A stretch of DNA of 64,000 nt from NCBI GenBank assembly GCA_002269645.1, contig NIVC01002128.1, forward strand, positions 62,001 to 126,000, given 5' to 3'. A program made the position numbers and the translations under genes. This DNA comes from Macrostomum lignano (Eukaryota). This document shows, piece after piece, positions 27,976 through 62,399 of this stretch (position 1 is the stretch's first letter; every line of letters begins with the position of its first letter). The notes under the pieces were generated by a model. It did no database searches, was not told where the DNA came from, and was given only the letters and a program-made list of their open reading frames with translations.

Positions 27976-28034
<59 letters not shown>

Positions 28035-38661: not shown

Positions 38662-39617
38662 CAGGGGCGTCGCCATAGATTTTATGATGGGGATACCAAG
38701 CCAATACACTACTTTTTTACGAGTAAATCGGTGTTGTTATCACTCACTTTGATGCGGCAGGCACTCATTTTAACGCCACAGGCACTCATTTTAGCACCGC
38801 AGACACTCATTTTAGCGCTACAGGCACTCATTTTAGCGCTACAGGCACTCATTTTAGCACCGCAGGCACTCATTTTGGCGCCAACAGGCACTCAGTTTAG
38901 CGCTACAGGCACTCATTTTAGCACCGCAGGCACTCATTTTGGCGCCAACAGGCACTCAGTTTAGCGCTACAGACACTCATTTTAGCACCGCAGGCACTCA
39001 TTTTAGCGCTACAGACACTCATTTTAGCACCGCAGGCACTCATTTTAGCGCTACAGGCACTCATTTTAGCGCTACAGGCACTCATTTTAGCACCGCAGGC
39101 ACTCATTTTGGCGCCAACAGGCACTCAGTTTAGCGCTACAGACACTCATTTTAGCACCGCAGGCACTCATTTTAGCGCTACAGACACTCATTTTAGCACC
39201 GCAGGCACTCATTTTAGCGCTACAGACACTCATTTTAGCACCGCAGGCACTCATTTTAGCACCGCAGGCACTCATTTTAGCACCGCAGGCACTCATTTTA
39301 GCACCGCAGGCACTCATTTTAGCACCGCAGACACTCATTTTAGCGCCACAGGCACTTATTTTAGCACCGCAGGCACTCATTTTAGCACCGCAGGCACTCA
39401 TTTTAGCACCACAGGCACTCATTTTAGCACCGCAGGCACTCATTTTAGCACCGCAGGCACTCATTTTAGCGCCACAGGCACTCATTTTAGTGCCCTGAAG
39501 CAAAATTACTAAAATTTCCATAGCGGGTCATAAAGGTGGGGTGGGGACAAAGCTTTGGCATGTCCCCCCCTCACAGCTTATACTAGGCTGCCCCCCCCCC
39601 CAGTGGCGGCGCCCCTG
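38662..39617. mobile_element. hAT-type MITE containing a 21-bp minisatellite
   Basis: TIRs are CAGGGGCGTCGCCA and TGGCGGCGCCCCTG (13/14). The flanks TTGACGAT and TTGGCGAT form an 8-bp TSD (7/8). An internal array of CAGGCACTCATTTTAGCACCG-type units spans about 38757-39490. Confidence 0.82.
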
Positions 39618-40485: not shown

Positions 40486-42127
40486 ATGTACTCATATCAG
40501 CTTCTAATTCTATCCTTATTTATTATCGGTAAGTATTTTATATTTACTGACATATAAACACAGAGCTCAGTGACTTGGGTTGTTCTGAAAGGATTTCAGA
40601 GGCCTCGTTAGAAATTCTATGTTAAAGTAAAGTCGGAAAAAACACACTTTTAAAGGGAAATGTACGTCGTAGAAGGGTACTACATGTATTTTGGCTAAGA
40701 TGCATGCAATAATTGTATACATGCCAATTGCTGCGCGCAAAACATCTATCTAACCCCTAGTCCTACTCTAAACTCTGTATTTCAGCTTCCTCAGTAGCTG
40801 CAGACGAGTTCAGCACACTTTCAAGACAGAAACGGGCGACATGCAGCTCCGCAGTTTGTTACAACGGTGGCACCTGCAACAACTTCACAGACAGCCCGCC
40901 CTGCCTCTGTCCGCTGCCCTACATTGCACCTTATTGCCGTGTCGCCGCAGACTACTGCTTCACCCTGCAGCCTGACAAGGGCATCACTGAGCTGCCTGTG
41001 TGCCAGAATGACGGCAACTGCACGCTGACTTACGCTGACCCATATTTTAACTGCTCTTGCTTACCTGGCTTTTATGGTAATCAATTAATTAGCATGATTT
41101 CAGCCAAATTGTTTAGGTTAATGTAAGAAATCTCCGAAATTCAGGGCTACGTTGCGAGCATGCGGAACCAATACCGGAAGCTACTACGCTACCATCTGAC
41201 GGCGGAACAAGCCCGAACTTTTCAACCGAAACAAAATCTACCGAAGTAGTCAGCACTGGCGTTGCAAGTGAGTTGATAATGATCATTACTTGTTCATGAA
41301 AAAATATTAGGCAGATTTAACTGCACTTTTAACTGACATTCAATTAAATATTCTGCAGACCTGACTACATCCGGTTGGCATGAAAGGATGGGAGTAGTGC
41401 TACTCATATCCGTCAGTGTTGGAGTCCCAATCGCCGTGGTGATAATTGCTGCCATGGCGGCTGCCATCGTTTTTGCTGCTCGTTATCGCAATCGCCAAAA
41501 GGTAAAAAAATCTATTGTACTGCTTGTACTTGCTGTTATAAGCCTGAAAGAGCCTAGAATGAGTTCCAGAATGTTATTTCCTGTGTGGTAATTCCCGCAT
41601 TGCTTACATGCTGCAATGCAGTCATTTTGCCCGACTTTTAGGCTAAAAAGAGACAAATGGAGAACAAAATTGCGCAGCTTCATCCGATTTTTAACACTTC
41701 TACCGCATCGCTTTGCAAAATTTCAAAAAAATGGTAGTTTTCTGACCATTTTGAAGCTTGTATTGAGAAATATTTATGCGAAATAGAAACTAGCGCATTC
41801 TGAAATATCAACATATTTCAGTTTAAACTTTTGTTGTGATGTCTTGACAATGTCTGCGCATATTCATCAGGCCAAAAGAAATAGAGAGTTTGTTATAATA
41901 TTCACATCATATAGTATACGTGACGATATGCGTTTTAAATGATTTTTTAAAAATACTGATTTGATCACAAAAAGTCTCCAAGAGAATATTTGAGAGGTTA
42001 TATTTATACAATATTTGCTGAGTAAAATACAATTCTCAAATGATTTCAGACCTCTCGAAGCGGCGACAGGACCAGATACGTCTGGGAAGAGGGCTGCGAA
42101 TCAGACTTCAATTCTCATGCAATCTGA
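40486..42127 (+). CDS. EGF-EGF type-I membrane protein, array gene 1 (furin-like RQKR before the EGF pair)
   Basis: Exons 40486-40528 (MYSYQLLILSLFII), 40786-41076 (EGF pair), 41145-41267 (GLRC plus Thr/Ser stalk), 41359-41501 (TM VVLLISVSVGVPIAVVIIAAMAAAIVFAA), 42050-42127 (TSRSGDRTRYVWEEGCESDFNSHAI*). Phases are consistent. Confidence 0.85.
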
Positions 42128-42850
42128 ACTTTGTAAACTAATGGAACGCTATGCTGAGTTGCTTAATTTTGATAATTAGGAAACGCCTCAATCTGTCATA
42201 GCATTTGTAAAAATCCATTGACAACTTTTTGCAGCAGCATATTTCTTTTGTTCACTAAATTTGCAAATGAAAGTGTTAAATAGTAACGTCAAAAAGCTGG
42301 GTAGCGGCACTTATTGAATGCAAGTGTAGCTTTTGACGATTCCAGGTTCGATTTAGCTTATACATTATATTGAATAGATAGCTAGCTTTGGTTTGCAGGA
42401 ACTCTGCGAGCTCGTGCAACAAAAAGCTAAATTAATTAGCTCGTATGCACCGAGCTTCACGGTTGGCTGCAGAAAGTTGTATTAATTTACTGCCATGTTT
42501 TGTGCTGGAAAATAATTGAAAATGTGGTGTCTTGATTTGCTGTATTCATTCTACTCGGAATGTAGGAAAACACACTAAGAGTTAATACTTCAGTGATTTG
42601 ATCAATGTAATAGTATGAAAACCTGTTATGGCAATTTCCGAGGATCATTTAAGGCCAGCATGCCGTTTGGTCTTTCACAAGCTTATCGAATTTGGCTTTA
42701 TAAAAGTACTACTCAAAACTGGCAAGCAAACAAATTCAAACAAACTTACAGCTTCTAAAAAAGAATTCTTTTTAGAATTTTCTGGGGCAAAATCCTACTT
42801 GATGCAATGCTTTTAGCAAAAAATTAGTCTAATCCACCTGTACTGTATTT

Positions 42851-44422
42851 TAAGGGTTGCCACTCTTCTTGTGGCGTATGCAAAGGGCCAGGGGGGGGCC
42901 ACTGGTCCCGCGATCATCCGACAAAAATACCGCTCCCAGAAAACGTTGCGCTCCTCCAAAAATTAACAAAAGAGGCAGCCAAACCCGACGAAAGCCCTTA
43001 AGAGACAGGAGCGCCCACCTAAGAGACAGCAGGGGCGCCCACCTAAGAGACAGCAGGGGCGCCCACCTAAGAGACAGGGGCGCCCACCAAAGAGACAGCA
43101 GGGGCGCCCACCTAAGAGACAGGGGCGCCAACCTAAGAGACAGGGGCGCCCACCTAAGAGACAGGGGCGCCAACCTAAGAGACAGGGGCGCCCACCTAAG
43201 AGACAGGGGCGCCCACCTAAGAGACAGGGGCGCCCACCTAAGAGACAGGGGCGCCCACCTAAGAGACAGGGGCGCCCACCTAAGAGACAGCAGGGGCGCC
43301 CACCTAAGAGACAGGGGCGCCCACCAAAGAGACAGCAGGGGCGCCCACCTAAGAGACAGGGGCGCCAACCTAAGAGACAGGGGCGCCCACCTAAGAGACA
43401 GGGGCGCCAACCTAAGAGACAGGGGCGCCCACCTAAGAGACAGGGGCGCCCACCTAAGAGACAGGGGCGCCCACCTAAGAGACAGGGGCGCCCACCTAAG
43501 AGACAGGGGCGCCCACCTAAGAGACAGGGGCGCCCACCTAAGAGACAGGGGCGCCCACCTAAGAGACAGCAGGGGCGCCCACCCAAGAGACAGGGGCGCC
43601 CACCTAAGGGACAGGGGCGCCCACCTAAGAGACAGGGGCGCCCACCTAAGAGACAGGGGCGCCCACCTAAGAGACAGGGGCGCCCACCTAAGAAACAGGG
43701 GCGCCCACCTAAGAGACAGGGGCGCCCACCTAAGAGACAGCAGGGGCGCCCACCCAAGAGACAGGGGCGCCCACCTAAGAGACAGGGGCGCCCACCTAAG
43801 AGACAGGGGCGCCCACCTAAGAAACAGGGGCGCCCACCTAAGAGACAGGGGCGCCCACCTAAGAGACAGGGGCGCCCACCTATGAGACAGGGGCGCCCAC
43901 CTAAGAGACAGCAGGGGCGCCCACCTAAGAGACAGGGGCGCCCACCTAAGAGACAGCAGGGGCGGGCGGGGCGCCCACCTAAGGGACAGGGGCGCCAACC
44001 TAAGAGACAGCAGGGGCGCCCACCTAAGAGACAGGGGCGCCCACCTAAGAGACAGCAGGGGCGCCCACCTAAGAGACAGGGGCGCCCACCTAAGAGACAG
44101 GGGCGCCCACCTAAGAGACAGCAGGGGCACCCACCTAAGAGACAGGGGCGCCCACCTAAGAGACAGCAGGGGCGCCCACCTAAGAGACAGGGGCGCCCAC
44201 CTAAGAGACAGGGGCGCCCACCTAAGAGACAGCAGGGGCACCCACCTAAGAATCAGGGGCGCCCACTGAGAGATACGAGCTAATGAAAGGGCAACCCCTC
44301 AAATGAAATGACAACCCCTCAAATTAAATCACAACCCCTTAAATGAAATGACAACTCATCAAATGAGATGACAACCCTCATCAAATGAAATGACAACTCA
44401 TCAAAGGAAATGGCAACCCCTA
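42851..44422. repeat. 21/24-bp minisatellite (CAGGGGCGCCCACCTAAGAGA +/- CAG, about 43005-44270) inside a possible TIR element
   Basis: The array is directly visible. It is bounded by TAAGGGTTGCCA (42851) and TGGCAACCCCTA (44411-44422), with 20-bp AAATGAAATGACAACCCCTC subrepeats at 44310-44422. No TSD was found. Confidence 0.75.
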
Positions 44423-44879
44423 ACGCCCTACTGAATGGAACAAATCTTGCACTTCATTACTAATGGTGCATGCTAACCAATTTAAACAAAAAAACATTTG
44501 TTGTAATGCAACGTAAAGTCTTGAATTGTATCGTGTTTTGTCATAAAAATCTTTTCTTTTTTAGCAATTTATTCGATTTTAGCCTCCATTTTGATTTGGC
44601 TAAATCAATAAATCAATAAATCAATAAATTTGATTGCAGTTTTGGCAAACTAGATGGCAAAAAGGTATGTTATTTGCAGTAGTTTTTTAGGTCTACCCTG
44701 CCCTCCTTTAGACGGCAGCACACACGATCTTCTACCTTAGCGTACCAAAGATTCCAAAGATACCAAAGATACCAAAGATAGAAAATCAATGGCTGTTTTC
44801 TCGCGTACAATTAAGTTGTTTTATGAGAGTGGAAATCTTTGGATTTATTCCTTACATATGGGTATGCAGTGACAATAAA

Positions 44880-45140
44880 AAAACAAAGCGGTCCAACCCG
44901 GTGGGGTGGCACTATGACCGGCTTCAACCACGCCATGCATTGGTGGAGGACATCAAACCGGGAGCGCTGCCAACTCAGCAAGCCGACATGCCGTCGACTG
45001 CGGTGCACCCGAAACCCCAGCCGGCAGCTCCAAGCCGGTATACGGGGGAGAATTTCCACAGCCACCGCCCTACGGGTCGGACAACCCACGACGCCCTGAG
45101 AGGCAACGGAAGCCTCCCTCGCTTGCGGATGGACCCATAG
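44880..45140 (+). mobile_element. Possible 3' fragment of a non-LTR retrotransposon (C-terminal Cys region)
   Basis: A GC-rich island whose frames give TGFNHAMHWW and VDCGAPETP, resembling the RLRTG..RF...MHxW...CDCG..QT C-terminal motif of some non-LTR clades. Degenerate. Confidence 0.4.
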
Positions 45141-45819
45141 TTTCGTCAGCTGTGCTCACAGCTTGGTGGTGAAGCCATCAAATCTGTTATAAATTTCAGA
45201 AAAACGTAGTACACACAGTAGTAGCCATAATAATGTATTCTGATATTGTTATACTGAAACTTCTACGCTCTTCCCGTATGCTAAATAGTAACATTCTAGA
45301 AACATCCCTCGCGCATCGCGAGTCTATCAATAATAACATCCCGAGTCATAACCAAGACTCGCTCGCTCTACTGCTACAGCGCTGATAAACTTTGTCACTT
45401 CTACAATGAATTTGCCGCCGAGTTACTTTTCAGGTTGGTTATAACAATACAAGACTCTTTTCATTTACTCGAAGATACAACATACGAGCTACACTGCATC
45501 ATACACGATCTTCTCTAGAAACAGGGATTTAGCCTAGAAACTCGAGAGTACTACTTAAAATTCAAAAGCAGTTTGCCTCCGTAAGTTAAAAAAATTCAAA
45601 CCTGTACAATTCAAGTTGTTTTGTTAGAAAGTATAAAAGTTTCTTGCATTTATTCCAAGTAATGTACATACGGGTAAACTCGTACCTAGCGGCAATAACA
45701 ACACACAAAGCGTATTAAAAAGCAGACAGATGCGCATTGGGTCACATGAGTCACGGTTAAAAAGAAGCCAGTAGAAAAAGAGAAGTTTGTGCGGAGAAAA
45801 ACATCTGCGGCCAAATTCC

Positions 45820-47641
45820 ATGCTTTACTCTACAAAACTGTCGCAGGATATGTTGATATTAATTTTCTTCACTCTCCTAACTGCATTCGGTAAGAATCCT
45901 GCAAAAAAACTAACGACTTTCAATGAGTTTTAACAGGTTTTAGTATATTCGATAATATTAGTCATTTGAGCTATTCTGACTAATCTTATAATAAATATGA
46001 GATCAAAATTAATGCATCTCAGGCAATGTCGAAGCAGCGAACTGCTCAACAGTCACCTGCTACAACGGCGGCACCTGCAACAACTTCACAGACAGCCCGC
46101 CCTGCCTCTGCCCGCTGCCCTACATCGCACCTTACTGCTCAGCTGCTGCAGACTACTGCTTCACACTGCAGCCTGACAAGGGCATCACTGAGCTGCCTGT
46201 GTGCCTGAATAACGGCACCTGCACTCTGGCCTACACCGATCCGTACTTTACCTGCAACTGTTCCGATGGCTACGAAGGTAAAATCAAGCCGATACTGTTT
46301 GATCAAAAAAAGTTAGGCTTCTACTTGCTTCTTCGACGTTTACTAGAATATATGGATAGTTAGTATATGGGGCTGAGTGAATGGAGCTTACAGATCTGTA
46401 CTTTAACAGTACATGACCAAATGTTTGCATAGTTTTGTCATAAGTTAGGAGGCAGAGTGGAGTGTGCACCCTGACGCACTTTAGGCGACATTGTCACACA
46501 ACCAACGAGAGGCATTACTGCTGATATCACCGACTCCCCTGAGCAGGCATACAAGCGCGCGGATACGTACGCAGTCATAAACAAGCACACACTCACACAA
46601 GAGTGCACAGCGGCCCTAATTTTATTTATCGTTAGGCATGTACACTTCATTGTGCTTTGGGGGTTGGGCCTCAAGAGCGATTCCCGATCCCACTGGAACA
46701 ATTTGTGTCCTTGAGCAAGACACTTAACTCTACATTGCTTCAGTTCCCCAGCTGTAAAATGGGTACCAGCATTTATTAACTGGTTTAATTGAGGGTGTGT
46801 GTGGCGACCCCCAAGTCCTTGGGCTGAACAGCCGTACGCAGCCTTCAGATGCGCCGCGCAATAGCTGCGGCTGAGCTGTCGGTTGCGCATCTGCCTATCG
46901 GGGCAGGTGTAATTAATTATTAGTATTATTATTATTACTAAGGTATAACATGCATTGCGCTTTAATATGTTTAGATACTCTCAAACTTCACAATCAGTTT
47001 TACAAGCCGTATTCACTAATATTCTAGGCTTTCGATGCAACGAGAGACACAAAGAAGACGACAGTAAGTGTCCCGATGAAAGTCAAATTAAAAAAATCTT
47101 CTATTGTGGCAAAAATAATAGCTACCGTTTTATTGTAATTTCAGCACTTGAATTTTCCGAGGCTTCCGTCACTGTAGGCGTCGCAGCTGCTGGCGGCACG
47201 GTCGGAGGCGTATGTATAATAGTAATCATTGTAGTAGTTTGCAAACGCAAAACAATTTGCAAGAAGCAGTCGGAAGCTCCAAGTAGCACAACAGTTACGG
47301 ATGAAACTGCCGATTCGACAACAAAATCTCACTGTCCGAGTACAGGAGCCGAAATTATTGATGAAACTGAAAATAAATATCAGCCGAATGACAACTCAAA
47401 AGCTGTCGAACTTAACAGCCAAGCAACCAATGGCACATCTCTCGGTGACACGGAAGTTGGTGGCAGCCCAGGTGGCAGAATTCCTGTGTCCGAGGAAAAC
47501 AATCCGCCAGATGCGGAAGCTGTCTACGCAGTGGTCCAGAAGAAAGCGAAAATACCTGAGTCCGAGAAAAACAATCAGCCAGATGCGGAAGCTGTCTACG
47601 CAATGCCCCAGAAGAGAGCGAAAACACCCTATGTCTTCTAA
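45820..47641 (+). CDS. EGF-EGF type-I membrane protein, array gene 2 (short stalk, long tail with duplicated EAVYA motif)
   Basis: Exons 45820-45889 (signal), 46023-46277 (EGF pair), 47028-47063 (GFRCNE), 47145-47641 (TM VGVAAAGGTVGGVCIIVIIVVVC-KRK; tail ...DAEAVYAVVQK...DAEAVYAMPQK...YVF*). Confidence 0.87.
46460..46655. repeat. Dispersed about 200-bp repeat (other copies about 55330-55530 +, about 62200-62320 -)
   Basis: Shared blocks CAAGCGCGC..ATAC.GTACGCAG.CA and TT.TAATCGT.AGGCATGTACAC. Confidence 0.55.
46655..46939 (+). mobile_element. tRNA-derived SINE, 5'-truncated, in an intron of array gene 2
   Basis: Core GTGTCCTTGAGCAAGACACTTAAC...CCCAGCTGTAAAATGGGTACC, an (ATT)n tail, and homology to the 63132-63465 copy. 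Confidence 0.7.
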
Positions 47642-49519
47642 CTTATTCAACTACTTACATATTGTCTTACGGATTACATCCTGCATACGTTGTTATTCTT
47701 GCTTGTAACGGTACACTTTCTTCTTCTCTCCGGTCTGAACTAAAAGAAGTAAAAATTTAGTAAAATTATTATTTACTATCGGTTTTTAAGGTTTTATTTT
47801 TGACCGAACGTCACATATGAAGTTTTTTAGTTGAAAATCGCTTCACATTGAACTCTTTGTAAATAATTGACTCATTTTTTATTCCAATTAATGAAAAAGT
47901 TTTTCATTTTTTGAATAATTTTCCATATTATAACAAATGTCCTGTGATATATTCAATTTATTTTAATCGCTACCCTACATGTATACAAGGACCACTAGGA
48001 ACACTTCGTTCTAGATAGTCTAGTAGTCCTTGCATTTGACTATAATTAGTAGAAGAACAATAAATGTTACCCGTAACTTATCTAACACCGTAACTTTTTG
48101 TTTCATAATTAATCTAGTATGTACCGATGACATCATGACTCTGTATATGTTCCATGATATATGATTCGACACCAATATACTGATCGAATCAAAGCTGTTG
48201 TTGGTATGACGTCTTGAACTCACTAAAGAGACAGCGCACCTGCTCAAAAGTGTGGCTACAGATCCTTCGTGCCGGGTCTGTTATAGGAGGTTGTTGCACG
48301 GCGCTTGGCTTTTAAACCCCCAAGTTGTGCTTTATTAGCGATTTCGCTTAACTGCTCAAGTTGTATTCTCGTATTTCTTGTATTTCTCACAACTTTTAAC
48401 TCCTGATGCAAAATATACTACTCGTCGTGCCAGGTGGCTTATTCCTTGTAGTCGCTGTCCTTCACGTTCTGTTGTTTCTGTCTTCGTCACCTCATCTAAC
48501 CTCTAAATGAAGCATTTTTCGTGACAGAGTCCTGGACAGACTAATCATGGCGTTAAATTCGAGTCTCAGCTCGAAGGAAGTCTCGAGAAACAATGAAAAA
48601 CGATTCAAAGATTACAAAGAAGATGAAAGGGTCATGTTGCAATAATATGCCTGCCAGATTGCTTGAAATTATTTGCTTCTTCTTTCAAGAACTTCTTTGT
48701 TTTGAGTGCTTTGGAAAGGATTTTACATCATGATTAAAAATTAATTCATAAACTTGACTTAATTCTCAGTATATCAGCACTGGACCTCCGAATTCTAAAC
48801 AAAACAGGCATGTTTCCCGCTCGAAGTGCACAAGTTCCCGCGAAATTCAACTGCTGCTGTCTCTTCAGTGTACTTTTAGTTGCTTTGCAAAACATCAAAT
48901 CCTTGCGAACTCCTTTTAGAAAACACGAATGTTTAATAATAATATTTCAAACATTTTCTCGACAAAATTGTAACAACACGCATGCTTTATTCATTTAGTC
49001 GAAAGTCCAGACAGTGAGACAGTGAAAGTTAGCTCGTAGCTTCGTAGTACGAAAATTTGAAAACTTCCTATCTCGCTAATGTATTTTGCAGGAGTTTAAC
49101 GAACTTCAGGTTTGTTATCCATGCTCTGCCACTAAGAGCTGAGTTCTACTTATTATTCACGAGTTCGGCATCTTTTTAGTAGCTGAGTTGGCAAAACTAT
49201 GCTTGCGTACAAAGTACTGCATTCTGTTCGACTGAAAACCCAGACCGAGCCCTAGCCTTGCGGATTTGTGTCTCGAGTAAAAGCGAGAATGTGTGCACCC
49301 AGCCCTACTTATGAGATTCTTATCCTGGTATTTCAACTCTGCACCTGCCATTGTGCCAGCCAACTAGGCTATGCGCTCGTTAAAGAATACAAAAATGGTA
49401 GCCATTTTCTGCAGTTCGTGCAATGCAATTTTCCTACTCAAAAAGAGAATGTAAGCAAGACCTGGCTATTTGCCAGCTACTTATATTTTTGCTGCGCGAA
49501 GGCTCATACTAGATTAACA

Positions 49520-52178
49520 ATGGCTGCGGCAAAACTCTGCATAGCACTGACCGTCATGTTGACTTTCTGCTCAAGTGAGGCCTTTTGAAAAAACTTTCTG
49601 ATCACTCTTTTGGCATTCCACTTTAATAGACAAGTAAAACCCTATTCAACTGATTGCAGCAGCATCACAAGCTGCCAACTGCTCAGCAATCACCTGCTTC
49701 AACGGCGGCACCTGCAACAACTTCACAGACAGCCCGCCCTGCCTCTGCCCGCTGCCCTACATCGCACCGTACTGCGAATCAGCAGCAGACTACTGCTTCA
49801 CCCTGCAGCCTGACAAGGGCATCACTGAGCTGCCTGTGTGCCTGAATGGCGGCAACTGCACTCTGACCTATACTGATCCCTATTTCAATTGCACCTGCCC
49901 ACCTGAGTCCACAGGTTCGGTTGAAATATTTTGTATCGAGAAACATTACATATGCTTTTCTATCTTACTTGTACACTGGATTACACCTTTAGCTGCTCAT
50001 GTAGTTTTGAGTATGACCAAAACGAGTTTCGGTCATACTCTGTACGTGAACTCGAAATCAAAGCATTAAAATATATACGGCTCGTAATTTCATATTTACG
50101 GTTTTCAGATCCGCGCTGTGAAATTGATAATTCAACAATTGAAACAACAATTGACACAGAAACAGCGACTAACCCATACACGGGCACAGTAGCTGCTGGA
50201 GACTCAGCTAATGAGACATCATCATCTTTATCAGCAACAACAGAAGCCTCAACGAGCGATATTTTAACACCTGCTGAAACAACATCTGATTATCAAACAC
50301 CTGGTGCAGCAACACCTGATGCAACAACAGCTTTTCTAGGAACATCTGATGCCTCAACATCTGATGATTCAACACCTGGTGAAATAGCAACTGCTCCATC
50401 AACACCTGATGCACTAACACCTGTTTCACCAACACTTGATCTCGCGACAACTTTTGCTTTGACGCCTGGTACAACAAAACCTGATGATTCAACACCTAGT
50501 GCAACAACACTTGATGATTCAGCATCTGGTCCAACAACACTTGCTGATTCAACACCTGGTGCAACAACACCTGATGTTTTAACACCTGGTGCAACAGCAG
50601 CTGATGTTTCAACACCTGGTGCAACAGCACCTGATGTTTCAACACCTGGTCCAACAGCAGCTGATGCAACAACTGATGCAACAGCAGCTTCAACAACACC
50701 TGATGCAACAACTGATGCAACAGCAGCTTCAACAACACCTGATGCAACAACTGATCCAACAGCTGCTTCAACAACACCTGATGCAACAACTGATGCAACA
50801 GCAGCTTCAACAACACCTGATGCAACAACTGATCCAACAGCTGCTTTAACAACACCTGATGCAACAACTGATGCAACAGCTGCTTTAACAACACCTGATG
50901 CAACAACTGATGCAACAGCAGCTTCAACAACACCTGATGCAACAACTGATCCAACAGCTGCTTCAACAACACCTGATGCAACTACATCTGCTCTAGCAAC
51001 TCCTGCTCAGTCTGCATCTACTGCCCTGCCAACTGTTTCAGCAACGACAGAATCAGCCACAGATTTTTCATCGATACCGACTCAATTAAAATCAACCACC
51101 GTAGAGTCACCTGTGTATAGCACCGCTTCAACGGTTCAAGCAGTTTCGACGTCTCCAGTGATTTCTTCAACACTTGCATCTACAAGCGAGAGTTCTGAAA
51201 TGCCGACTCTTTCCCCAGCGACTGCGGCATCGACAGCATCAATCGCGAATTCTTATACAACACCGGTTCCACTGACAGACCTTACATCACATTCAACGAC
51301 AGTAGTGAAAGATTCAACAACAGCCCCTCCGACTTCAACAGCAACCACGGTGCCGTCAGTTAGCACCGAGTCAATGCCTCCAGTAGTTGAGTTAACATCG
51401 TCGTGGTCAGAAGCGACGACTAAATCAACAATTACTAGTTCTACAAGTGATTCGCCTACTTCAAAAGTTGTCATGTCAACTGCCAGGCCAAGAAGTAAGT
51501 CGTTCAACAGATGTATGATGCTGATACTGGCATAAAGTTAGGGGAAATAGTGCCTAAATCAAACCCAGTTTATTTCGTGACATTTCTTGCCTGCAGCCGA
51601 TTCGTTTGGTAATGAAAGGATTTTTATATGCTACTACAGTTTTTCCTCCCTGTTGAAATCGGTTAGATAGAACTGGGGGTTCTGTATCAAACTATCTAGC
51701 TGGCATTTATGCTTATTATTAAAAGACATTTAGGATTTTTAACGGGTTAAATGATGGAGTATAACGTATTATTATGGTACACTGTACTTGTCACGTTGTC
51801 AAACTGTCATGAGAGACAATCGTCCCCCCTAGTAGTTCAGATGACGCTCAGCGCTGAATAATAATTCCAAACTCACACTTCTCTAGGCATCAAAGCATCA
51901 ACCATGAGGGAGGACGTCGGGCTGATGATTGTCAGCGTTTTTCTTCCGTTAGTGTTGGTGACGGTCACCCTGTTTATCGCTGCGATATACAATTTTGTGT
52001 CAATGAATAGTTCCACGGCTCCACGGCAGCCCAGGGTAATTTATATTATGGTAAATATATATTTCTCTTTTTGGTTCAAGAACTAACTTTTTTCTAATTT
52101 TGCTTTCAGATTCAAGAGAACATGCCATGGTCACACTACGTATATGGAAGTCCGAGCAGCTCATCGCAACTTTATTAG
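49520..52178 (+). CDS. EGF-EGF mucin-stalk type-I membrane protein, array gene 3
   Basis: Exons 49520-49574 (MAAAKLCIALTVMLTFCS), 49660-49914 (EGF pair), 50109-51494 (462-codon Thr/Ser/Pro/Ala-rich exon with 10-aa and 13-aa repeats), 51887-52035 (TM VGLMIVSVFLPLVLVTVTLFIAAIY), 52110-52178 (...SSQLY*). Confidence 0.88.
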
Positions 52179-52769
52179 TAATCCACTTTTGATGACAACG
52201 TGGTGAAGACTGCTACAATACGCTAGCAACACATGTTTCCTATTCAAAATTTGTCTAGATTGTTTTTCTATAATTTACTATGCATAGATTCGCCTTCATA
52301 AAATAAAATAAAATAAATACACAGTTTGGTATTTTATCCATGATATTCTCTGCTTTATCTGTAAACCCTGGTGTATTACAAGCAACCCCCCTAACTCAGC
52401 TCTAGCGACTAGCGCATATATGTACACTTGCAACTCACTACAATAGTAATCTTAATAGAAACCAATTAGCTCATTAAACTACCCATTCGTATGTTCGCGA
52501 CATCAAGGACTTTTTCAAGACTCCCCAGGAAACCCTGCGTCACCTGTAGTACCGAAATTTGTGCCATGGTGGCTCCAAGCATAGAAACGCTGAATGATAA
52601 AGATGGTATCCAGCTAAACGATTACTTTAATCTCATAAAGATGCTAAGGTAAACGTTTTTCGGAACTTCTAGTAAATGCCGAAGGCAAACAGCAACAAAA
52701 ATACGCAGATAGTTTAGGTATTAAGAAATACTGAAGCAGAATTGTCACGACTTTTAGGCTAGGCTACGA

Positions 52770-53080
52770 CCGAATTCAAGACGCCGGCGCCAGTCTGTCG
52801 GCGTCGGTAGGGTGCCTGCATAATCAGCAGCAGCACCTTACGCACCGGATGTGGGCAGTACAATTCAGCGCGGATGATGTGCCCTGCCAGCTTGAATTAC
52901 TGGAAAGCACAAAATGTCACTTTGAACGGACCAGGCCGGCGGGGTGATGGAATGGCGCAAAAGTATCTCGCTCATCGCCGATCATGTAAGCAGATCCAGG
53001 TCCGTCAGTGTCAACATCTTGGCTTTGTAGAGCAGTAGGGTATCGACCACCGACCTCTGGCGGTTGGGTAGGAGCTCCAC
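52770..53080 (-). mobile_element. Third fragment of the same non-LTR family (C-terminal region)
   Basis: The minus strand reads KLAGHIIRAELYCPHPVRKVLLLIMQAPYRRRQ, matching AGHLICAESYCPQPVEEVLLLTLHAPYRRGQ at about 35600-35690. Confidence 0.65.
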
Positions 53081-53779
53081 AACTACCATAGAGAAGAGAA
53101 GCAATTTTTAGAGTTGCCACCGAGGTAAAGTTTCGAACCGATGTAGATTTCAAAGAAAAAGCTCTGGTACGCATTGCAACAGACAAAAAATGATAGTTCC
53201 ACCCCAGCACGCTGCATTATACTCATACTTGCAAATACCAGATATACATTTGCTAAGGTGAGTCCATTTATGGCCAAAATCAATTTTCTAGACTGTATCA
53301 TAACAGTAAAATTCATGCCAGTGACTTTCGAGCTGAAAAGGTTTTAAGTTTTTGTTGGGGGGGGGGTCTCGCGGTCAGAGAAATTTAGTGAGCATCAAAG
53401 AGAAAGAAGTTTCCGAAGCAAAATCGTGGAGACGCAGATGAATTCGCAAGAGCACAATGATGTTCTCGAGAAAAAATGTAACTCGCGTACATTTTAATAC
53501 GGCAAGCATCGCTATACATTCCTGCTGCATATTCGTCCATTTTTTTCGTCTTTTTGCAATTGTATTCATAGAAAAAACAGTCTGCAGCTCAGATATACGG
53601 TATGCTCATAAAGAGCTTGCTCACACAGAAAAACTGTTTCATTTTGGGTTGAGCGAAAGTGCGACAGTCTACAAGCTCGCAGGTACTGCATACTCGTAGT
53701 TCAAGAAGAATAAAATTACATTACAGGGATTCGCACCATTTTTATCTGAGCTTAAGCCGTCTTTTCCAAAGAATTGAAA

Positions 53780-54789
53780 ATGACAGCACTGCAGTTAATT
53801 CGCATTGCCGGCAGTCTGCATGTTTTATCATCTTTTGCAATTGGTAAGTTAAGCCAAGCAGCTTCTTCATAATACTTCTTTGCAGAATAAAACAATCGAA
53901 TTCTTGAATTTCACTTCTTTCACATTCGTAGAAAAGCATTGCTGCAACTAACTGAATTTTCACAGTTACTGTGTGATAAAAGCTTGCCAAAAAATGAAGA
54001 TGATAAAATTTGCAGCACCAACTCAGGCTGCGAACTGCTCAACTGTCACCTGCGACAACGGCGGCACCTGCAACAACTTTACAGTCAGCCCGCCCTGCCT
54101 CTGCCCGCTGCCCTACATCGCACCATACTGCCGATCTGCTGCAGACTACTGCTTCACCCTGCAGCCTGACAAGGGCATCACAGAGCTGCCTGTGTGCCTG
54201 AATGACGGCAACTGCACTCTGACTTACACCGATCCGTACTTTAACTGCAGCTGCCCTACCGGTTATACTGGTAAAACTTTTTTTAAATATTTTCATATTG
54301 CAAAATTCGGTTAATGCACAAAATCTCCATTAAAAATTTCTTTAAACTTTTTCACCTCTTACTAAGGCACTAGATGTAGTGATAAAGTTTGGAATGCAGA
54401 ATCCAACGATCCAACGAATCCAACCTACTGCCTCTACGATTGCGGTAATCAATTGTGCCATAAAATAAAAAATTTTTGCCATTTTCAATTTTTTAAAGTT
54501 GAAAAGCTCATGTCATGCTCCTTATTCTTAATCTCCTCAAGACAGCGGCCTGACTACAACCAGTAAGGTAGTGATTGGTGTGTGCGCACCTGTTCTGTTC
54601 ATCATCATCGGCAGCTTTTTTCTCTATATGTACCCAGCCGGAAGAACTGAGGTGAGTTTTGAGAATGAAAATTTGCGATTGTCTTTTTCTTCCATTTATT
54701 AGCTAGCATCGTCTCACCTCTTACTGTTACAGAAGGTTACAGACCCTAAAGGGGAACAGAACGCAAAGTCACGCGGCTGCGGGTGCTGA
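53780..54789 (+). CDS. EGF-EGF type-I membrane protein, array gene 4 (compact; tail ends in GCGC*)
   Basis: Exons 53780-53843 (signal), 54016-54270 (EGF pair), 54367-54444 (GTRC...YCLYDC), 54542-54651 (TM VVIGVCAPVLFIIIGSFFLYMY), 54733-54789 (KVTDPKGEQNAKSRGCGC*). Phases are consistent. Confidence 0.8.
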
Positions 54790-56093
54790 TGCTGCTGGCG
54801 CTGCTTCAGCTGAAAAATCAGTAAAACTCTGTCGCGATTGACTTTATGAGGATTTTGAGTTTTTTAAAAATAATGTAATGCAATCGAAGTACTGCACAGA
54901 GTACTCAGTCTGGCTTGGCGAACCCGTGAGGCAGGGTCGACCGTGGACAAAATCAATAAACGGTCTCCTCTTTCTGACTTTGATTTTACTGTCGCTAAAA
55001 AGCCCTTCGGACTGATTTCTTACCTGAATTTTCTTTAGAATTAACGTCTCAGAAACAACGCGACTGCTTTTCTTTAAAGCAAATGCAAGCATTGAGTAGT
55101 TGGTAAAGAACAGACCATTTTGGCAAGAGTTTCTAAGGCAGTTAAAATCACGAGCCTATCCATTTTAAATGTGCATACGGTATATAAATGAAAACTTAAA
55201 AAATCTGAGGTATTGTACTTGAATCACTCTTGTAAGTTTCTACAGCAGTTATTTTAATCCAGTCTTAACCAGACTACAATATCGATGGAAATTAATCGAA
55301 ACCAAGAGACCCAATGACGCGTGCATGTTCTAGGTCTGCATTGCTTAAAATTCTGATTGAGGACACCCTTGCCACAAGCAGCATTGAGCCAATTCTGCCC
55401 ACTCCGCTGACTCCTGAGCACATGCAAGCGCGCCAATACTGTACGCAGGCACGCACTCATGCACACATAGGGTGTACACCGGTCCTGACTTTCTAATCGT
55501 CAGGCATGTACACTCTCTGTTTCGTAGTTGGGGGGTCGTCAGACCTGTTTTCCAGTGAGCTGATCAGTCCCCTCCTATACGGCTTGACGATTTCTTAAAA
55601 ATTATTTTTTCCGTAATCCTGTTGGTTACTACTGTCGGTCCGATGCTACCAAGTGTGTCTTTTTTACTAGAGCGTACATGCTATGCCTTTAATTCTGTTT
55701 CTTATTCTGTCTCTCTCTCTCTCCAAGCATCAACGATGCTAAAGTACAGCAGCGCAGCAAAGTAAAGATAAAATAGCCTGTTAGTTTATTGCTCATCCAA
55801 TGCGGAGCCAGCAGATTGTCCATGGAGCAGTATGGAATAACGCTCGGGTTAGGGTAATTTTAAACATAACGCACAATTTTAGAACTGCACGTACAGTGTG
55901 ACTCAGGATGAAGTGTCTATTGACAAAATGTCTATTTTTACAGAAGGATGCCACAATGTAAGAAATAGAGAAAAATAGTAAACGAGATTAGGAAAGAAAG
56001 TAAGGTAGAGTTGGTTGCGAACTTAACGAGCTTCATTTTATAAACAAATTTATAAAAATTATCTACTGTAAAAACTGGTAGTATATGTAAAGC

Positions 56094-57548
<1,455 letters not shown>

Positions 57549-58061
57549 GTTGTTTCAAGCTACACCTGGGCGTATTGGCGTAGAAATTCACGCCAGCAAC
57601 TCTAATAGCAACTTGTTTGATCGACTCTCGGCGATTTACAATAATCTAGTATCAGTACATGATCTACGTTCGTATTACCACTTTGCTACTGAGCACACGC
57701 GCTAGATGCTTTGATATTTTTTACCATTTTCTGAAAATCCAAAATATCTCTACAATTCGGCAAGGCATTCTATTTTCATTGCGTCTGATCTCTATTGTTT
57801 TATGTATTGATTCACTACTCAAGCCAGTAAGACATGCGCATTGAATGTTTTCCGTTTTTTCAGAGGATTAACGCCCTAAACTAGATTGTAGCCAATGACC
57901 AAGAGAGATGAACAATCGTGTAGCTACCAGTACACTAAAACAGTACATATAGATATCCGGATTTCATTTTAAGCGATTCCAAATAGCTTGTGTTTCCTGG
58001 TTATAACAATCTTCCTGCGTTTTCAATTGCTATTCTCTGGGCAATACGGGCCAAGTCAGAT

Positions 58062-59412
58062 ATGTCTACTGTTTCCAATGGGACTAAAATATGTCTACTG
58101 TTTCTGTACTTAGCTGGTAAGCATGTTTCTCTGCTGCGATTTTATTCATAAGTACATTTATTCATGCAACCATTCAGCCTTATTTGTAGGACTCTATTTT
58201 CTTACTAATTCATTCGCAGCGCCATCACAAGCTGCGAACTGCTCAACAGTCACCTGCCACAACGGCGGCACCTGCAACAACTACACAGCCAGCCCGCCCT
58301 GCCTCTGCCCGCTGCCCTACATCGCACCGTACTGCGAATCAGCAGCAGACTACTGCTTCACCCTGCAGCCTGACAAGGGCATCAATGAGCTGCCTGTGTG
58401 CCTGAATGACGGCAACTGCACTCTGACCTATACTGATCCCTATTTCAATTGCACCTGCCCACCTGAGTACACAGGTTTGTATTAGTTAGGTTTAAATATC
58501 AGCAAACGTTTCATTCTAACGCAAGTACTTTTTTATGAACGAATTGTTCAGGAAATCGTTGCAACGAAACCGTGACAACCCCTGATGACACTACTTCGAG
58601 TCAATCGACATCAACACCAGAATCGTCTGCTACAACCGGGACAACGGCACCAACGTCGACTGCTACAGCTGGGACATCATCACAGACATCGACTGCTACA
58701 GCTGGGACATCAGCACCGACATCGACTGCTACAGCTGGGACATCATCACAGACATCGACTGCTACAGCTGGGACATCATCACAGACATCGACTGCTACAG
58801 CTGGGACATCATCACCGACATCGACTGCTACAGCTGGGACATCATCACCGACATCGACTGCTACAGCTGGGACATCAGCACAGACATCGACTGCTACAGC
58901 TGGGACATCAGCACAGACATCGACTGCTACAGCTGGGACATCATCACCGACATCGACTGCTACAGCTGGGACATCATCACCGACATCGACTGCTACAGCT
59001 GGGACAACGGCACCAACATCGACTGCTACAACTGAGACTGCACTACCAACAACGACAGAACTAGACTTAGAAAATGCTGCCGACACTGCAACCGGTGGGA
59101 TTACTATTTATGATTTCGAAAAAAATCTTTTCAGTCTTTACGTAGGCCGTAAAGAAAATGTTTTAAAATGCCTTGATCTAACCGTGTTAATGCTGCAGGG
59201 TGTAGGTGGGCTTAAAACGAATAGAGTTGAAAAAATTTATTGGTGCAAATTAAAACTGGTTAGCTCGATTAAGAAATTCCGAACACACCTGAACTTCCTT
59301 AGATTTGTGTCGGCAAACAGTGGCTATCGGTGCGACATTCGTTCTGCTGCTCAGGTTGTACTAGCATTTACTATTTGGAAATGGCAGTTTTGAAATCAGC
59401 TGTTGCTATAAG
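58062..59412 (+). CDS. EGF-EGF mucin-stalk protein, array gene 6 (TM-like exon disrupted)
   Basis: Exons 58062-58116 (MSTVSNGTKICLLFLYLA), 58220-58474 (EGF pair), 58552-59094 (GNRC plus 36-bp TSTATAGTSSPT repeats). A candidate TM exon at 59303-59412 (TVAIGATFVLLL...) has an in-frame TAG at 59362. Confidence 0.75.
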
Positions 59413-60617
59413 GTGAGAAGCGATTTCGCATTTTCTGCGTTTTGTAATCAAGATCTGTTTAATTGGTTGTATCCTCATAAAGTGCAGGTGTTCTGCTTTT
59501 GGGATTTAAAAAATACCACAGATTTAAGAAAACTGATCGAACCATAGATAACATCGATTCTCTTAACATTGAAACAGTTTTGAATTCAAACCCTCTATTT
59601 CAGAGTATCGACATCGGCTGTGATAATTGCCACAAGTTTGATGGGCTGATTGTCAAAGTGGACGGCATCGCTTGGTGTACCAAAGCCTTTAAAGTATCTT
59701 GAGAATGTTTCAGAAAGATGTACCTAAATTAATAAACTTTCAAGTTCTTATCTACTGCATATTTGGGTCTGGATTCGAAATCCAGCATTTTATAGTGCAA
59801 AATTTGTGCGGTAAATTTGATTATGATCTTCTGACCTTTTTAGCCAACTTGTCAGATAAAGTTATGAGTAAGCCTCTAAAATGCTTTTGTCTGTTTACAC
59901 TGTAGACCTAAACTAATTTTGTTGTTTTTCTGCGCTTGTATTCAACTGAATAAACGGATCGCGTTTCTCATTTTAAGTCGAGCACTTTTTTGCATTCGTT
60001 GCTACTTGTTTTGGACAGAAAGTGCAGGATACAAGGCATAGTCACAGAACTGAAATATTTACATGCATTAAACATTATTTCAAATGTTGCATAATTCTAT
60101 GTAGATCTAGAATAGCTCTACTCAGGTATCAATGTTCATTCTCTGGTGTTGTTTCCCGGGATAGATTGGGGCGAATGTGAGCATGAAAAGAAGGAAGTTT
60201 TGGATCAAAGAAGCACTGAGTGCGAAGTGTGCACTGTGGGGAGAGGAGAGAAGAGACGAAGTGAAATGAAGTGTTGGCTGAATGACCAAATGAACGCACC
60301 ATTGAAGTGCAGTGAGAGAGTTGATAAGGGTAAGAAGAAGTCAAGGTAAGAAAGTACACTAGAGAGAAGGAGACAGCTAAGCTGGGAAATAAATCAGTGC
60401 TTCTCAATCAGAATCCTAAAGAAGGATCTTGAAATATTCAATAGCAGTAATTAAAAGAACGCTTGCTTAGCTACCTACTTTTACGTGAAGGATGCTGCTA
60501 ATATCGCAGAATTCCAAATACAAAAGGTTCAGTGTGCGAGTATTCACTGAGAAGGACAACAAGTACGGTTTACACAGTAAAGGATACGTGAGTCACTCTT
60601 TGCGCGGAGAAGCATCA

Positions 60618-61138
60618 ATGATGGCAATGGCTTGCATTCTACTGTCACTAATAGGTGAGTGACAGAGTCCCAGAAATCGTCAACAATAAAGGTTTGCAGG
60701 AAATCTTGTAAGAACTTTAGTTTTTAAACAACCTCGTTTCAGCTCAAACTGAGGCTGTGAACTGCTCAACAGTCACCTGCTACAACGGCGGCACCTGCAA
60801 CAACTTTACAGCCAGCCCGCCCTGCCTCTGCCCGCTGCCCTACATCGCACCGTACTGCGAATCAGCTGCAGACTACTGCTTCACCCTGCAGCCTGACAAG
60901 GGCATCACTGAGCTGCCTGTGTGCCAGAATGGCGGCACCTGCACTCTGGCGTACACCGATCCGTACTTTACCTGTAGCTGTACAGGCCGTTATACAGGTA
61001 ATATATCTGAAACAGTAGCACTTCCTCTGTTTAGTAGAAAATTGGTCTTAAAAATCGATTGAATAAATTCAGGAACCCGTTGCCATTTGGAAACTGCTCG
61101 TCTATCGAACCAAAACTCGACAGCGGTTCCCGGATTAA
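60618..61138 (+). CDS. EGF-EGF protein, array gene 7 (3' exons not identified)
   Basis: Exons 60618-60654 (MMAMACILLSLI), 60743-60997 (EGF pair), 61073-61138 (GTRCHLETARLSNQNSTAVPGL). No convincing downstream TM exon was found. Confidence 0.75.
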
Positions 61139-62399
61139 GTAAGTAGAATTGGTTACTCAGCGACTTGAGCGCTGAGTTCTGTAACTAAAGCGCTGCTTGC
61201 AAATTGCAGGTGTGATGTCACCAACCCTGCTAACTGGAATCTCTTTTTCCGGCATGTGGCTTTTGAGATAAATCGCAAATCGCAATACGAGCTCATGTTG
61301 CTTGCCGGATAAACTTCTACTTAACGAATCGAAGACAAAAAGCAGATACTGTACATCATTTCGCACGCTGATACATGTATTTTCTCGTCTCATCTCCTAC
61401 AGAGAAGTATATTGATGTCATAAAGTTTATTTGATTTGACATATTCTACTTTCATATTTTCATACATGAATGTGCTGTGCTCTTTTTCAATGTTTTTCTC
61501 GCTTAGGTATTTACTGTGGGCTGAATCAAACAGTACAAATTCACACAACAATAAAGCTATTTTTGTCCAGCTCAGCTAAATAACGCATGGTAGAAAAAAG
61601 CATCAAGTAACTCAAAGCTATTTGAGAGCGTCCCACTGTCCCATTGCTCTCGGTGAGTTTCCTTTACTGAAACTTGGCTTGTAAATTATCACCACAATAA
61701 ACGCGTCAAATACTTTCCCAGAGAGGCAACTTTCTGTGAGAGCGTTCGGTTTTATAACGCTTTTCGCTTTGCAAACTTGTTCAGATGAAGTCTGCAGTCT
61801 GCGGTAAACTTCTATTGAGACAAATTAACGGCTGTTTTATTCATTTTTATGTCAGAAAACTGGAACAAAACAACTTCTAATAAAATTAAAGATAAAGTTT
61901 GCTGCAACGGAAATCTTCAGTATTCCAGAAAGAAAGAGATTTGAATGAGAAATATTAGCCGACAGGCAACTCCAATCCAGAAGACATAGTGGACAAGTTA
62001 GCTAACAAAAATGCAAATGCGTTGCCTTCAATCAAATTGCTTGTACAATTATAGGAACCCAAATATAGAAACAGCCTAATTTTTTGCTAAGCCAGCTGAC
62101 AGCAGATTTTATGCAGATATAGCAGCAATGGGCTACACGATTTAATGGCGAGAAATGCTTCCGTAGAACAAAATTTACAATTTTACAATTTTACGTAGAA
62201 CAATTTTTCAAGGACAACACCCAGGGTACACAGAATGTGCATGTCTGACCTATTAGAAAATCAGGGTCGCTGTACACCCTGTGTAAGCCTGTGTATGAGT
62301 GCATGACTGCGTTCAGTATTGGTGCTCTTATATGTTCTCAGAAGTCAGCGAAATGGCCTCAGCGCTAGTTATAAGACGATGTCACCGAAGTATTTGCGC

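Follow-up and report, generated by a model that had tools for sequence, protein, structure and literature searches.

The genome of the flatworm Macrostomum lignano carries, within a stretch of 64,000 nucleotides (nt) of contig NIVC01002128.1 (positions 62,001 to 126,000; assembly Mlig_3_7, GCA_002269645.1), a tandem array of seven genes, g1 to g7, whose products begin with the same type of head, a pair of epidermal growth factor (EGF) modules. The whole stretch is referred to below as the window. With a probability of about 0.8, the seven genes are old whole-gene duplicates in which the core of the head exon has been homogenised by short-tract gene conversion together with purifying selection. 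The system itself is undescribed, and the evolutionary process, concerted evolution by gene conversion, is a known one.

Part of the evidence for this reading lies in the distribution of conservation within the head exon. A core of about 180 nt, approximately exon nt 24-203, is shared by the genes, whereas both edges of the same exon have diverged. In particular, identity at third codon positions among g2-g7 is 0.87-1.0 over alignment positions 16-195 and drops to 0.43-0.60 in the last 51 nt. When only codons for the same degenerate amino acid are considered, identical codons make up a fraction of 0.954 in the core versus 0.554 in the last 51 nt, and of 0.68 when the core is compared with F_a, a diverged family member that has kept the protein motifs. 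Protein constraint and codon bias would not suffice to account for these values, which indicate that the core is being kept uniform in its DNA sequence. The exon edges and the introns are saturated and, for this reason, the genes must be old.

The seven-gene array and its head exon

A repeat search over 38-64 kb of the window returns seven direct copies of a unit of about 262 nt on the plus strand, starting at 40818, 46019, 49656, 54012, 56416, 58216 and 60739 and showing 76-100% identity to the g3 copy; no further head copy is found in the window by tblastn. No unit shares its ATG, its hydrophobic signal exon (phase 1 at the 3' end) or its stop codon with another, and every intron of the seven gene models is of the GT..AG type. 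The models thus bear out the initial annotation of this DNA, which had proposed seven plus-strand units, each with a signal exon followed by an EGF-pair exon; the head-exon starts that it gave (40786, 46023, 49660, 54016, 56417, 58220 and 60743) are exact, each of them lying just after an AG, and the exon ends lie directly before a GT. The features are as follows, with protein lengths in amino acids (aa):

40486-42127, plus strand: gene g1, 225 aa; exons 40486-40528, 40786-41076 (head), 41145-41267, 41359-41501 and 42050-42127
40786-41076, plus strand: g1 head exon (EGF pair), 291 nt, the most diverged head in the array
45820-47641, plus strand: gene g2, 285 aa; exons 45820-45889, 46023-46277 (head), 47028-47063 and 47145-47641
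46023-46277, plus strand: g2 head exon, 255 nt, phase 1-1
49520-52178, plus strand: gene g3, 637 aa; exons 49520-49574, 49660-49914 (head), 50109-51494 (stalk), 51887-52035 (transmembrane) and 52110-52178
49660-49914, plus strand: g3 head exon, 255 nt, with the homogenised core at about 49683-49862
53780-54789, plus strand: gene g4, 187 aa; exons 53780-53843, 54016-54270 (head), 54367-54444, 54542-54651 (transmembrane) and 54733-54789
54016-54270, plus strand: g4 head exon, 255 nt
56094-57548, plus strand: gene g5; exons 56094-56166, 56417-56673 (head), 56784-56825, 57118-57241 (transmembrane) and 57402-57548
56417-56673, plus strand: g5 head exon, 257 nt, frameshifted near its 3' end
58062-59364, plus strand: gene g6, 304 aa; exons 58062-58116, 58220-58474 (head), 58552-59094 (stalk) and 59303-59364
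58220-58474, plus strand: g6 head exon, 255 nt, a mosaic whose 5' part equals the window g5 and whose 3' part equals g3
60618-61271, plus strand: gene g7, 139 aa; exons 60618-60654, 60743-60997 (head), 61073-61138 and 61210-61271
60743-60997, plus strand: g7 head exon, 255 nt

The head exon is therefore exactly 255 nt long in the five genes g2, g3, g4, g6 and g7, as had been noted before; the g1 exon has 291 nt and the g5 exon 257 nt, and phase 1-1 applies to all seven. The first module reads C-x4-C-x5-C-x8-C-x-C-x8-C and the second C-x14-C-x5-C-x10-C-x-C-x8-C. Both the cysteine pattern and the head peptide CFTLQPDKGITELPVC proposed by the initial annotation are present, and in 7/7 genes the exon after the head supplies, with its initial G-x-R-C, the sixth cysteine of the second module. 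When stretches of 500 nt are aligned, conservation begins a few bases inside the AG and ends a few bases before the GT, and the flanks are unalignable. The claim that the shared exon is conserved even at synonymous sites holds for exon nt ~24-203 and fails at both edges. In the same way, g5 and g6 had been estimated to differ at about four of about 190 nt, which is right for the core, with four differences across alignment positions 31-195.

Outside the head, nothing is shared that alignment can detect. Once the head is masked, a dispersed repeat of about 120 nt is all that blastn (word size 9) detects in common between units, and BLASTP finds no similarity among the proteins downstream of the head (best E = 0.08); the reported lack of similarity among introns and signal, stalk, transmembrane and tail exons is thus upheld. 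The stalks, transmembrane segments and tails had also been called unrelated. They are unalignable, yet they are probably homologous by descent, as judged from the shared intron position and phase and from the G-x-R-C motif of exon 3.

Further properties of the core are consistent with conversion. Its GC content at third codon positions (GC3) is 0.75-0.80 versus 0.21-0.52 elsewhere in each coding sequence, with an intron GC content of 0.30-0.41, a pattern that GC-biased conversion would produce. Variants shared between copies are clustered along the exon (P = 0.0002-0.004, Sawyer-type permutation on condensed fragments of polymorphic sites). The ratio of nonsynonymous to synonymous polymorphism (pN/pS) of the core is about 0.30 overall, so that no global signal of positive selection is found in it. 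The motifs LPYIAPYC and LQPDK.IT.LPVC are kept in diverged relatives, and the EGF scaffold is under purifying selection. Contrary to what had been supposed, the head is not constant: about 11 positions vary upon the conserved scaffold, and 17 distinct cores are found among 20 copies.

Conversion patches in the subgenome copies

Three homeologous subgenomes, which differ by about 2%, are represented in the Mlig_3_7 assembly (PMC10733133). Two loci on other contigs, L002 (NIVC01000070.1, covering g3-g7) and L003 (NIVC01001196.1, covering g2-g6), are collinear with the window and 88-99% identical to it, introns included, and they fit the other two subgenome copies of the array. Since the seven-gene layout is common to the three copies, the array predates the subgenome split. 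In what follows W denotes the window, B denotes L002 and C denotes L003, so that W_g6, for example, is the g6 of the window; the flanks and the diverged 3' end of the head exon served to assign positional counterparts.

Comparison of these counterparts reveals patches that belong to other members of the array. Specifically, positions 31-62 of W_g6 carry the g5 version; B_g7 equals B_g6 over positions 57-69, two synonymous variants included; W_g5 differs as a block from B/C_g5 at positions 84-117; and the core of C_g4 resembles g3 and g7. More generally, at 36 of the 53 sites that differ between positional counterparts, every state is also found in non-positional paralogues, against 7.5 +/- 2.5 (maximum 18 in 5000 simulations) under a null of random mutation. 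The heads are also more different than their surroundings: differences amount to 6/255 in the g7 head vs 3/800 in its near-identical flanks (P = 0.008), and to 9/255 in the g4 head vs 0/394 in the upstream flank (P = 0.0002). These mosaics, the 36 of 53 sites with shared states and the contrast between core and edge codons support what the initial annotation had proposed, that is, that the head is kept common by gene conversion.

Several of the mosaic heads are exactly reproduced in UniProt models, with P0002 corresponding to C_g4 and P0006 to g5 and g6 of B/C. We take these gene models to derive from a separate, earlier assembly, and their agreement argues against a polishing artefact. At g3, g5 and g6, L002 and L003 are equal and the window differs from both.

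The assembled sequence of g5 differs between the copies. In the window, two deletions of 1 nt, both in T runs, affect its head exon (56417-56673) and its transmembrane exon (57118-57241). The counterparts on L002 and L003, including P0010 (221 aa), are intact and, for this reason, the frameshifts are either private to one subgenome or errors. The presence of two frame breaks in one small gene, and of none in its six neighbours, suggests that the window g5 is a real pseudogene on this subgenome, with a homopolymer or assembly error as the alternative. As regards g7, collinearity of L003 with the window is lost after 14819, just before this gene, and the next 7 kb contain no head exon; a rearrangement may have taken place here, or else g7 lies farther along the contig. 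The UniProt models P0003/P0004 nevertheless include a third head of the g7 type, the 5' block of which is g5-like. Finally, the ratio of nonsynonymous to synonymous substitution rates (dN/dS) of stalks and tails between subgenomes is 0.2-1.0 with very few changes, suggesting weak constraint at most.

The favoured sequence of events can be outlined as follows. Whole-gene duplication, long ago, would have given rise to seven paralogues encoding small surface glycoproteins of the secretory pathway, whose introns, stalks, anchors, tails and head-exon ends would then have drifted to saturation or beyond alignment. The core of about 180 nt would have been kept near-identical by recurrent short-tract interlocus conversion, probably GC-biased, and by purifying selection on the EGF scaffold. 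The process may be self-sustaining, with tracts confined to the exon, as conversion would start and spread only where homology survives and the tracts would thereby be trapped inside it. At the same time, conversion would reshuffle the roughly 11 tolerated positions among paralogues and subgenomes, which would explain why nearly every copy shows its own combination on a common scaffold.

Competing explanations and the origin of the head

A number of observations weigh against gene conversion between old duplicates, or against a shared function of the heads. Conversion is read from assembled sequence, and polishing might mix reads of near-identical cores; M. lignano is a neopolyploid, for which 36% of the scaffold length has been reported as chimeric (PMC10733133). 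The core of the diverged F_a also has a high GC3 (0.71), so that high GC3 alone is no proof of GC-biased conversion. Further heads on other contigs (L004 at 3640 and 10303; L005 at 10172, 15177 and 19108; L006 at 6400) have cores with 0.81-0.95 identical codons relative to the window cores, which requires either ectopic conversion between arrays or an extra constraint on DNA or RNA. Two genes, g1 and g7, are without RNA-based annotation on the contigs seen and are represented by ab initio models only. On the protein side, regex scans of all tails find no immunoreceptor tyrosine-based inhibitory, switch or activation motif (ITIM, ITSM, ITAM) and only two YxxPhi matches. AlphaFold2 models of the head, in addition, are too poor to use, with a predicted local distance difference test score (pLDDT) of 45 from nine sequences and of 58 from eleven sequences with the last cysteine included.

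The conservation of the off-contig cores at synonymous sites, together with the high GC3 of F_a, is what selection at the nucleotide level without conversion would predict, whether exerted through an RNA structure, a small-RNA target, a splicing enhancer or an extreme codon preference. Such an explanation is nevertheless improbable. It does not account for the block-wise exchange of variants between paralogues of different subgenomes, nor for heads that differ more than their near-identical flanks do. Neither Rfam (gathering threshold) nor ARAGORN detects an RNA gene in the window, and no overlapping antisense gene is found in the head exon, all three antisense frames of which are closed. F_a, moreover, keeps the protein motifs with just 0.68 identical codons, and therefore the protein can be conserved without freezing the DNA.

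There is, likewise, only a small chance that the array is real and ongoing conversion is not, the subgenome mosaics being artefacts of assembly or polishing. The sequence comes from a long-read assembly of a neopolyploid with many chimeric scaffolds (PMC10733133). The same window contains a perfect palindrome of 4.4 kb that resembles a fold-back artefact, and the g5 frameshifts sit in T runs. Such an origin is, however, difficult to reconcile with the recurrence of several mosaic heads in the UniProt models and with the agreement of L002 and L003 on g3, g5 and g6 against the window. Besides, the core-versus-edge contrast, the Sawyer-type test and the GC3 values, all obtained within the window, are independent of the other contigs.

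The fact that nothing but the head can be aligned could also mean that seven unrelated genes each received, not long ago, a copy of one mobile or shuffled EGF-pair exon. The structure of the genes makes this very doubtful: the same layout, with a phase-1 signal exon, the head and then a G-x-R-C exon that completes the second EGF module, recurs in 7/7 genes, and the last cysteine of that module falls outside the shared exon. Conservation fades within the exon, rather than at terminal repeats or at splice sites, and no hallmarks of repeats or transposons are found beside it. The nearest relatives from outside the family point in the same direction. They are EGF pairs from the N-terminus of multi-EGF/laminin-G proteins of the same flatworm (P0018, P0042 and P0093; E = 1e-22, about 50-57% identity), other EGF proteins matching the first EGF module only. 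In P0018 (Mlig002106) the EGF pair is encoded by one phase 1-1 exon, preceded by RVRR and ending just before V-R-C, as in g1. The family head thus probably descends from the second exon of a P0018-like gene, the seven genes being whole-gene duplicates, and this equal exon structure disposes of the mobile-exon idea.

One long gene, or alternative splicing with serial or mutually exclusive EGF exons or with variable first exons on constant exons, would find some support in the UniProt ab initio model P0006, which fuses g5 and g6, and in the report that about 7% of M. lignano transcription units are polycistronic and resolved by trans-splicing (PMC5730564), so that neighbours are possibly co-transcribed. 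P0006, however, includes a translated intron, and every unit runs from an ATG with signal peptide to an anchor and an in-frame stop of its own. The GenBank gene models of Mlig_3_7 are guided by RNA sequencing (PMC5730564); they annotate g2, g3 and g4 as separate genes on NIVC01002128.1 and the counterparts of g5 and g6 as separate genes on two sister contigs. Because these models call g2-g6, or their counterparts, separately, serial exons of one mRNA are excluded as far as existing data allow, and to the same extent the seven units are separate genes; the one-gene explanation retains a very slim probability. The initial annotation had named two observations that would have undone its interpretation, a single long mRNA and introns or tails as similar as the head. 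What is found instead is a set of separate models with unalignable introns and tails.

A recent tandem duplication, in which the copies are alike since they are young, would agree with tandem genes on one strand with equal exon phases, but it can be dismissed in view of the lack of similarity in adjoining introns, signal exons and all downstream exons, of synonymous sites that approach saturation over the final 51 nt of the head exon (identical-codon fraction 0.55) and of a seven-gene layout that, being common to three subgenome copies, makes the array older than their split.

The family extends beyond the window. A word-indexed protein search returns five fragmentary matches, and an exhaustive profile search recovers the full-length family; the close protein matches are all from M. 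lignano. Among the heads of other contigs, the third one of L005 is truncated at its 3' end, finishing with CTRAYTDPMATQVANRFG and a stop codon, and is probably a pseudogene, and the L006 head is the most diverged copy, with 74% protein identity. In their orthogroup table, Brand et al. 2020 list every family identifier searched under OG0000007, which ranks among the largest orthogroups of Macrostomum. Besides about 32 entries from M. lignano and a single one from M. pusillum, it contains numerous 'isoforms' that M. hystrix and M. spirale contribute from a few Trinity genes. A stretch that is identical between paralogues leads assemblers to report such multiple isoforms of one Trinity gene, which is no more than a hint of the same head sharing in M. 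hystrix and M. spirale. No literature description was found under the family or gene identifiers, which are not contained in the genome-paper supplements, and the literature and supplements searched hold no expression, ligand or phenotype data for the family.

Surface architecture, genomic surroundings and known systems

All seven proteins follow one layout, in which the signal peptide and the EGF pair at the N-terminus are followed by a stalk rich in Ser/Thr, some 20 to 470 residues long, and by an anchor. A transmembrane segment and tail had been assigned to each gene, which is correct for g1-g5; g6 and g7 end in a GPI-like (glycosylphosphatidylinositol-like) manner, with a hydrophobic stretch of 13-14 residues at the C-terminus whose Kyte-Doolittle mean is 1.2-1.3 vs 2.6-2.9 for the transmembrane segments of g1-g5. 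Judging from these residues, g6 and g7 look like GPI-anchored rather than transmembrane proteins. None of the transmembrane segments of any gene contains Asp, Glu, Lys or Arg.

The individual proteins differ considerably. In g1, a pro-region ending in RQKR lies in the head exon and is followed by a short Ser/Thr stalk, a transmembrane segment and a tail of 33 aa; the model matches the UniProt models P0011/P0156 and is missing from the GenBank record annotation. The almost stalkless g2 has a transmembrane segment and a tail of about 130 aa with the PDAEAVYAxxQK motif in duplicate, and its translation is identical to GenBank PAA60643.1 (P0009), whose locus L001 corresponds to window 35820-57641 with 100% identity. 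The stalk of g3, instead, is a mucin-like sequence of 462 aa rich in Thr/Ser/Pro/Ala/Asp with repeats of 13 and 10 aa, followed by a tail of about 40 aa; the GenBank gene encodes 670 aa and has the same stop as the 637-aa model. The g4 model equals the GenBank gene on NIVC01002128.1 in span and length. The stalk of g6, about 180 aa, consists of 11-aa TSxxTSTATAG repeats, and its C-terminus, VAIGATFVLLLRLY followed by the stop, has a hydrophobic stretch of 14 residues with no cytoplasmic residues; the splicing of g6 is confirmed by its counterpart P0007 (PAA91826.1). A short linker leads in g7 to the C-terminus LLTGISFSGMWLLR and the stop, an ending of the g6 type; its last exon matches P0003, and the gene is missing from the GenBank annotation.

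As regards domains, six cysteines with EGF spacing are found in both modules. The Pfam EGF models (PF00008/PF12661/PF07974) give 22.3-22.6 bits for the g1 model, just over the cut-offs of 21.5 and 22.1, and place the head alone just under them. No Pfam domain is found above threshold in the proteins downstream of the head, and neither a seven-transmembrane/GAIN, a C-type lectin nor a SEA domain was found. The O-fucose consensus is C2-x4-(S/T)-C3, and the C-x-N-G-G-T-C of the first module fits it. Variable head codons 51, 63 and 12-17 of the alignment (e.g. g3 49683-49862) toggle glycosylation motifs: the DKGIT/DKNIT change gains an N-glycan sequon, and GNCT/GTCT loses one and puts a Thr before the third cysteine. 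Gain and loss of sequons at variable positions could tune binding.

Taken together, the predicted proteins would display one binding module on the cell surface at varied heights, with varied anchors and tails. The head may be a binding module needed in several membrane contexts, and conversion and selection would keep it common. The initial annotation had gone further and suggested one recognition surface coupled to several signalling outputs, possibly in immunity or allorecognition; such a role may exist, but the tails, with no Pfam domain and no ITIM, ITAM or ITSM, lend it no support. It is conceivable, although unlikely, that the head forms a recognition code, in which about 11 positions shuffled across at least 13 loci and three subgenomes would provide combinatorial surface identity, or mate, gamete or self-recognition in a hermaphroditic flatworm, with transmembrane, GPI-like and long-stalk members as receptor, decoy and spacer forms.

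Other features of the window surround the array. Copies of a CUB-domain gene lie upstream of it (3249-5300, 23276-25949, 29873-31214 and 32324-32987), so that the EGF array may sit in a larger cluster of genes for surface proteins. The CUB domain of P0015 shows 82% identity at 32324-32707 and 25-34% at the other CUB places, and P0015 itself probably joins two genes in one model, a CUB/mucin gene of this kind and one with a diverged EGF head. The palindrome, listed by the search as two abutting pairs, is a perfect inverted repeat at 12472-21299, whose arms (12472-16851 and 16921-21299) are separated by 69 nt; free of mismatches over 4.4 kb, it resembles an assembly artefact from the fold-back of long reads more than a biological structure. 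Just upstream of it lies a gag-like open reading frame (10270-10836), and for this reason the region is probably a retroelement.

Three minisatellites with a 21-nt period are found before g1 (38758-39490), between g1 and g2 (42999-44273) and after g7 (62539-63015). The first and third are reverse-complement relatives, and the minisatellites are open in several frames, for example as a CGAK(R/M)SA heptad repeat at 62299-62829, with no gene annotation on NIVC01002128.1. The dispersed repeat of about 120 nt (46538-46646, 55399-55520 and, on the minus strand, 62228-62356; 75-78% identity) is probably a short interspersed element, with no tRNA or Rfam match. Simple repeats comprise (TCAG)135 at 37122-37660, (CTGT)56 in intron 3 of g5 at 56861-57086, a GA-rich tract of 1.3 kb at 27251-28588 and a 16-nt array of 30 copies at 132-601.

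Among known systems, Notch offers the closest structural matches, in that the best hits in a PDB search are EGF fragments of human NOTCH1 (E ~1e-5), although the similarity is weak. The Notch repeats share with the head the generic human-EGF-like (hEGF) cysteine spacing and, in the first module, C-x4-T-C between the second and third cysteines. The second module of the head, on the contrary, has a family-specific 14-residue loop between its first two cysteines (FTLQPDKGITELPV), absent from Notch repeats, and starts without the calcium-binding consensus residues. The spacing of EGFR ligands (EGF, neuregulin and Spitz) is C-x7-C-x4-5-C-x10-13-C-x-C-x8-C in a single juxtamembrane module; the spacing of the array differs, it has two modules, and these are membrane-distal in g3 and g6. 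Neuregulin and EGF match the head weakly (E = 0.003-0.4).

Clustered protocadherins and UGT1A, in which variable first exons are spliced to shared constant exons, have tandem, similar exons for extracellular domains as the array has, but their logic is opposite: the array consists of complete genes with private terminal exons, and sharing operates by DNA conversion, not by splicing. An EGF tip on a Ser/Thr-rich, presumably O-glycosylated stalk is typical of EGF-TM7 receptors (CD97/EMR), of the CD93/thrombomodulin group and of membrane-tethered mucins. g3 and g6, with their long tandem-repeat stalks, are alike, whereas the stalks of most members are very short, and the relation in sequence is no more than the generic EGF fold; repeat stalks being present just in g3 and g6, and Pfam finding no SEA or other module, the array does not fall among the membrane-tethered mucins. 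The multi-EGF/laminin-G proteins (Mlig002106, that is P0018, together with P0042, P0093 and P0138; Crumbs/EYS-like) carry an N-terminal EGF pair after a signal peptide and RxRR, as g1 does. They differ from the array in being large, with many more EGF repeats and laminin-G domains, and neither a tandem array nor concerted evolution is seen for them.

The closest parallel is with paired receptors, in layout and in evolutionary mechanism. In CEACAM1/CEACAM3 and their relatives, in Siglec-11/16 and in Siglec-5/14, the ligand-binding domain is gene-converted (PMC2832619, PMC5112662, PMC7042247, PMC11646289, PMC5701461, PMC4042635). As in the array, neighbouring paralogues have a near-identical outermost domain through interlocus conversion, and their transmembrane and cytoplasmic parts differ; in the CEA family, GPI-anchored members exist. 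The array differs in that its head is an EGF pair and not an Ig V-set domain, its host is a free-living flatworm, it comprises at least seven genes with at least three further arrays, and its homogenised tracts are trapped in one 255-nt exon with the introns spared. Likewise, with no ITIM, ITAM or ITSM and no charged transmembrane residue, it gives no sign of the opposed signalling of paired receptors.

Exon-restricted concerted evolution of an outermost domain is best known from these vertebrate immune receptors, in which it marks a shared binding surface. Here the same signature is found on an EGF-pair head, with many members, in a regenerating flatworm model in which three subgenomes show individual conversion events. 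The array is therefore a compact natural system for studying tract length, GC bias and the homology limits of interlocus conversion, and it points to an unstudied, lineage-expanded family of surface proteins. If the head variants are functional, it could be an invertebrate recognition system; otherwise, it is a clean textbook case of the mechanism.

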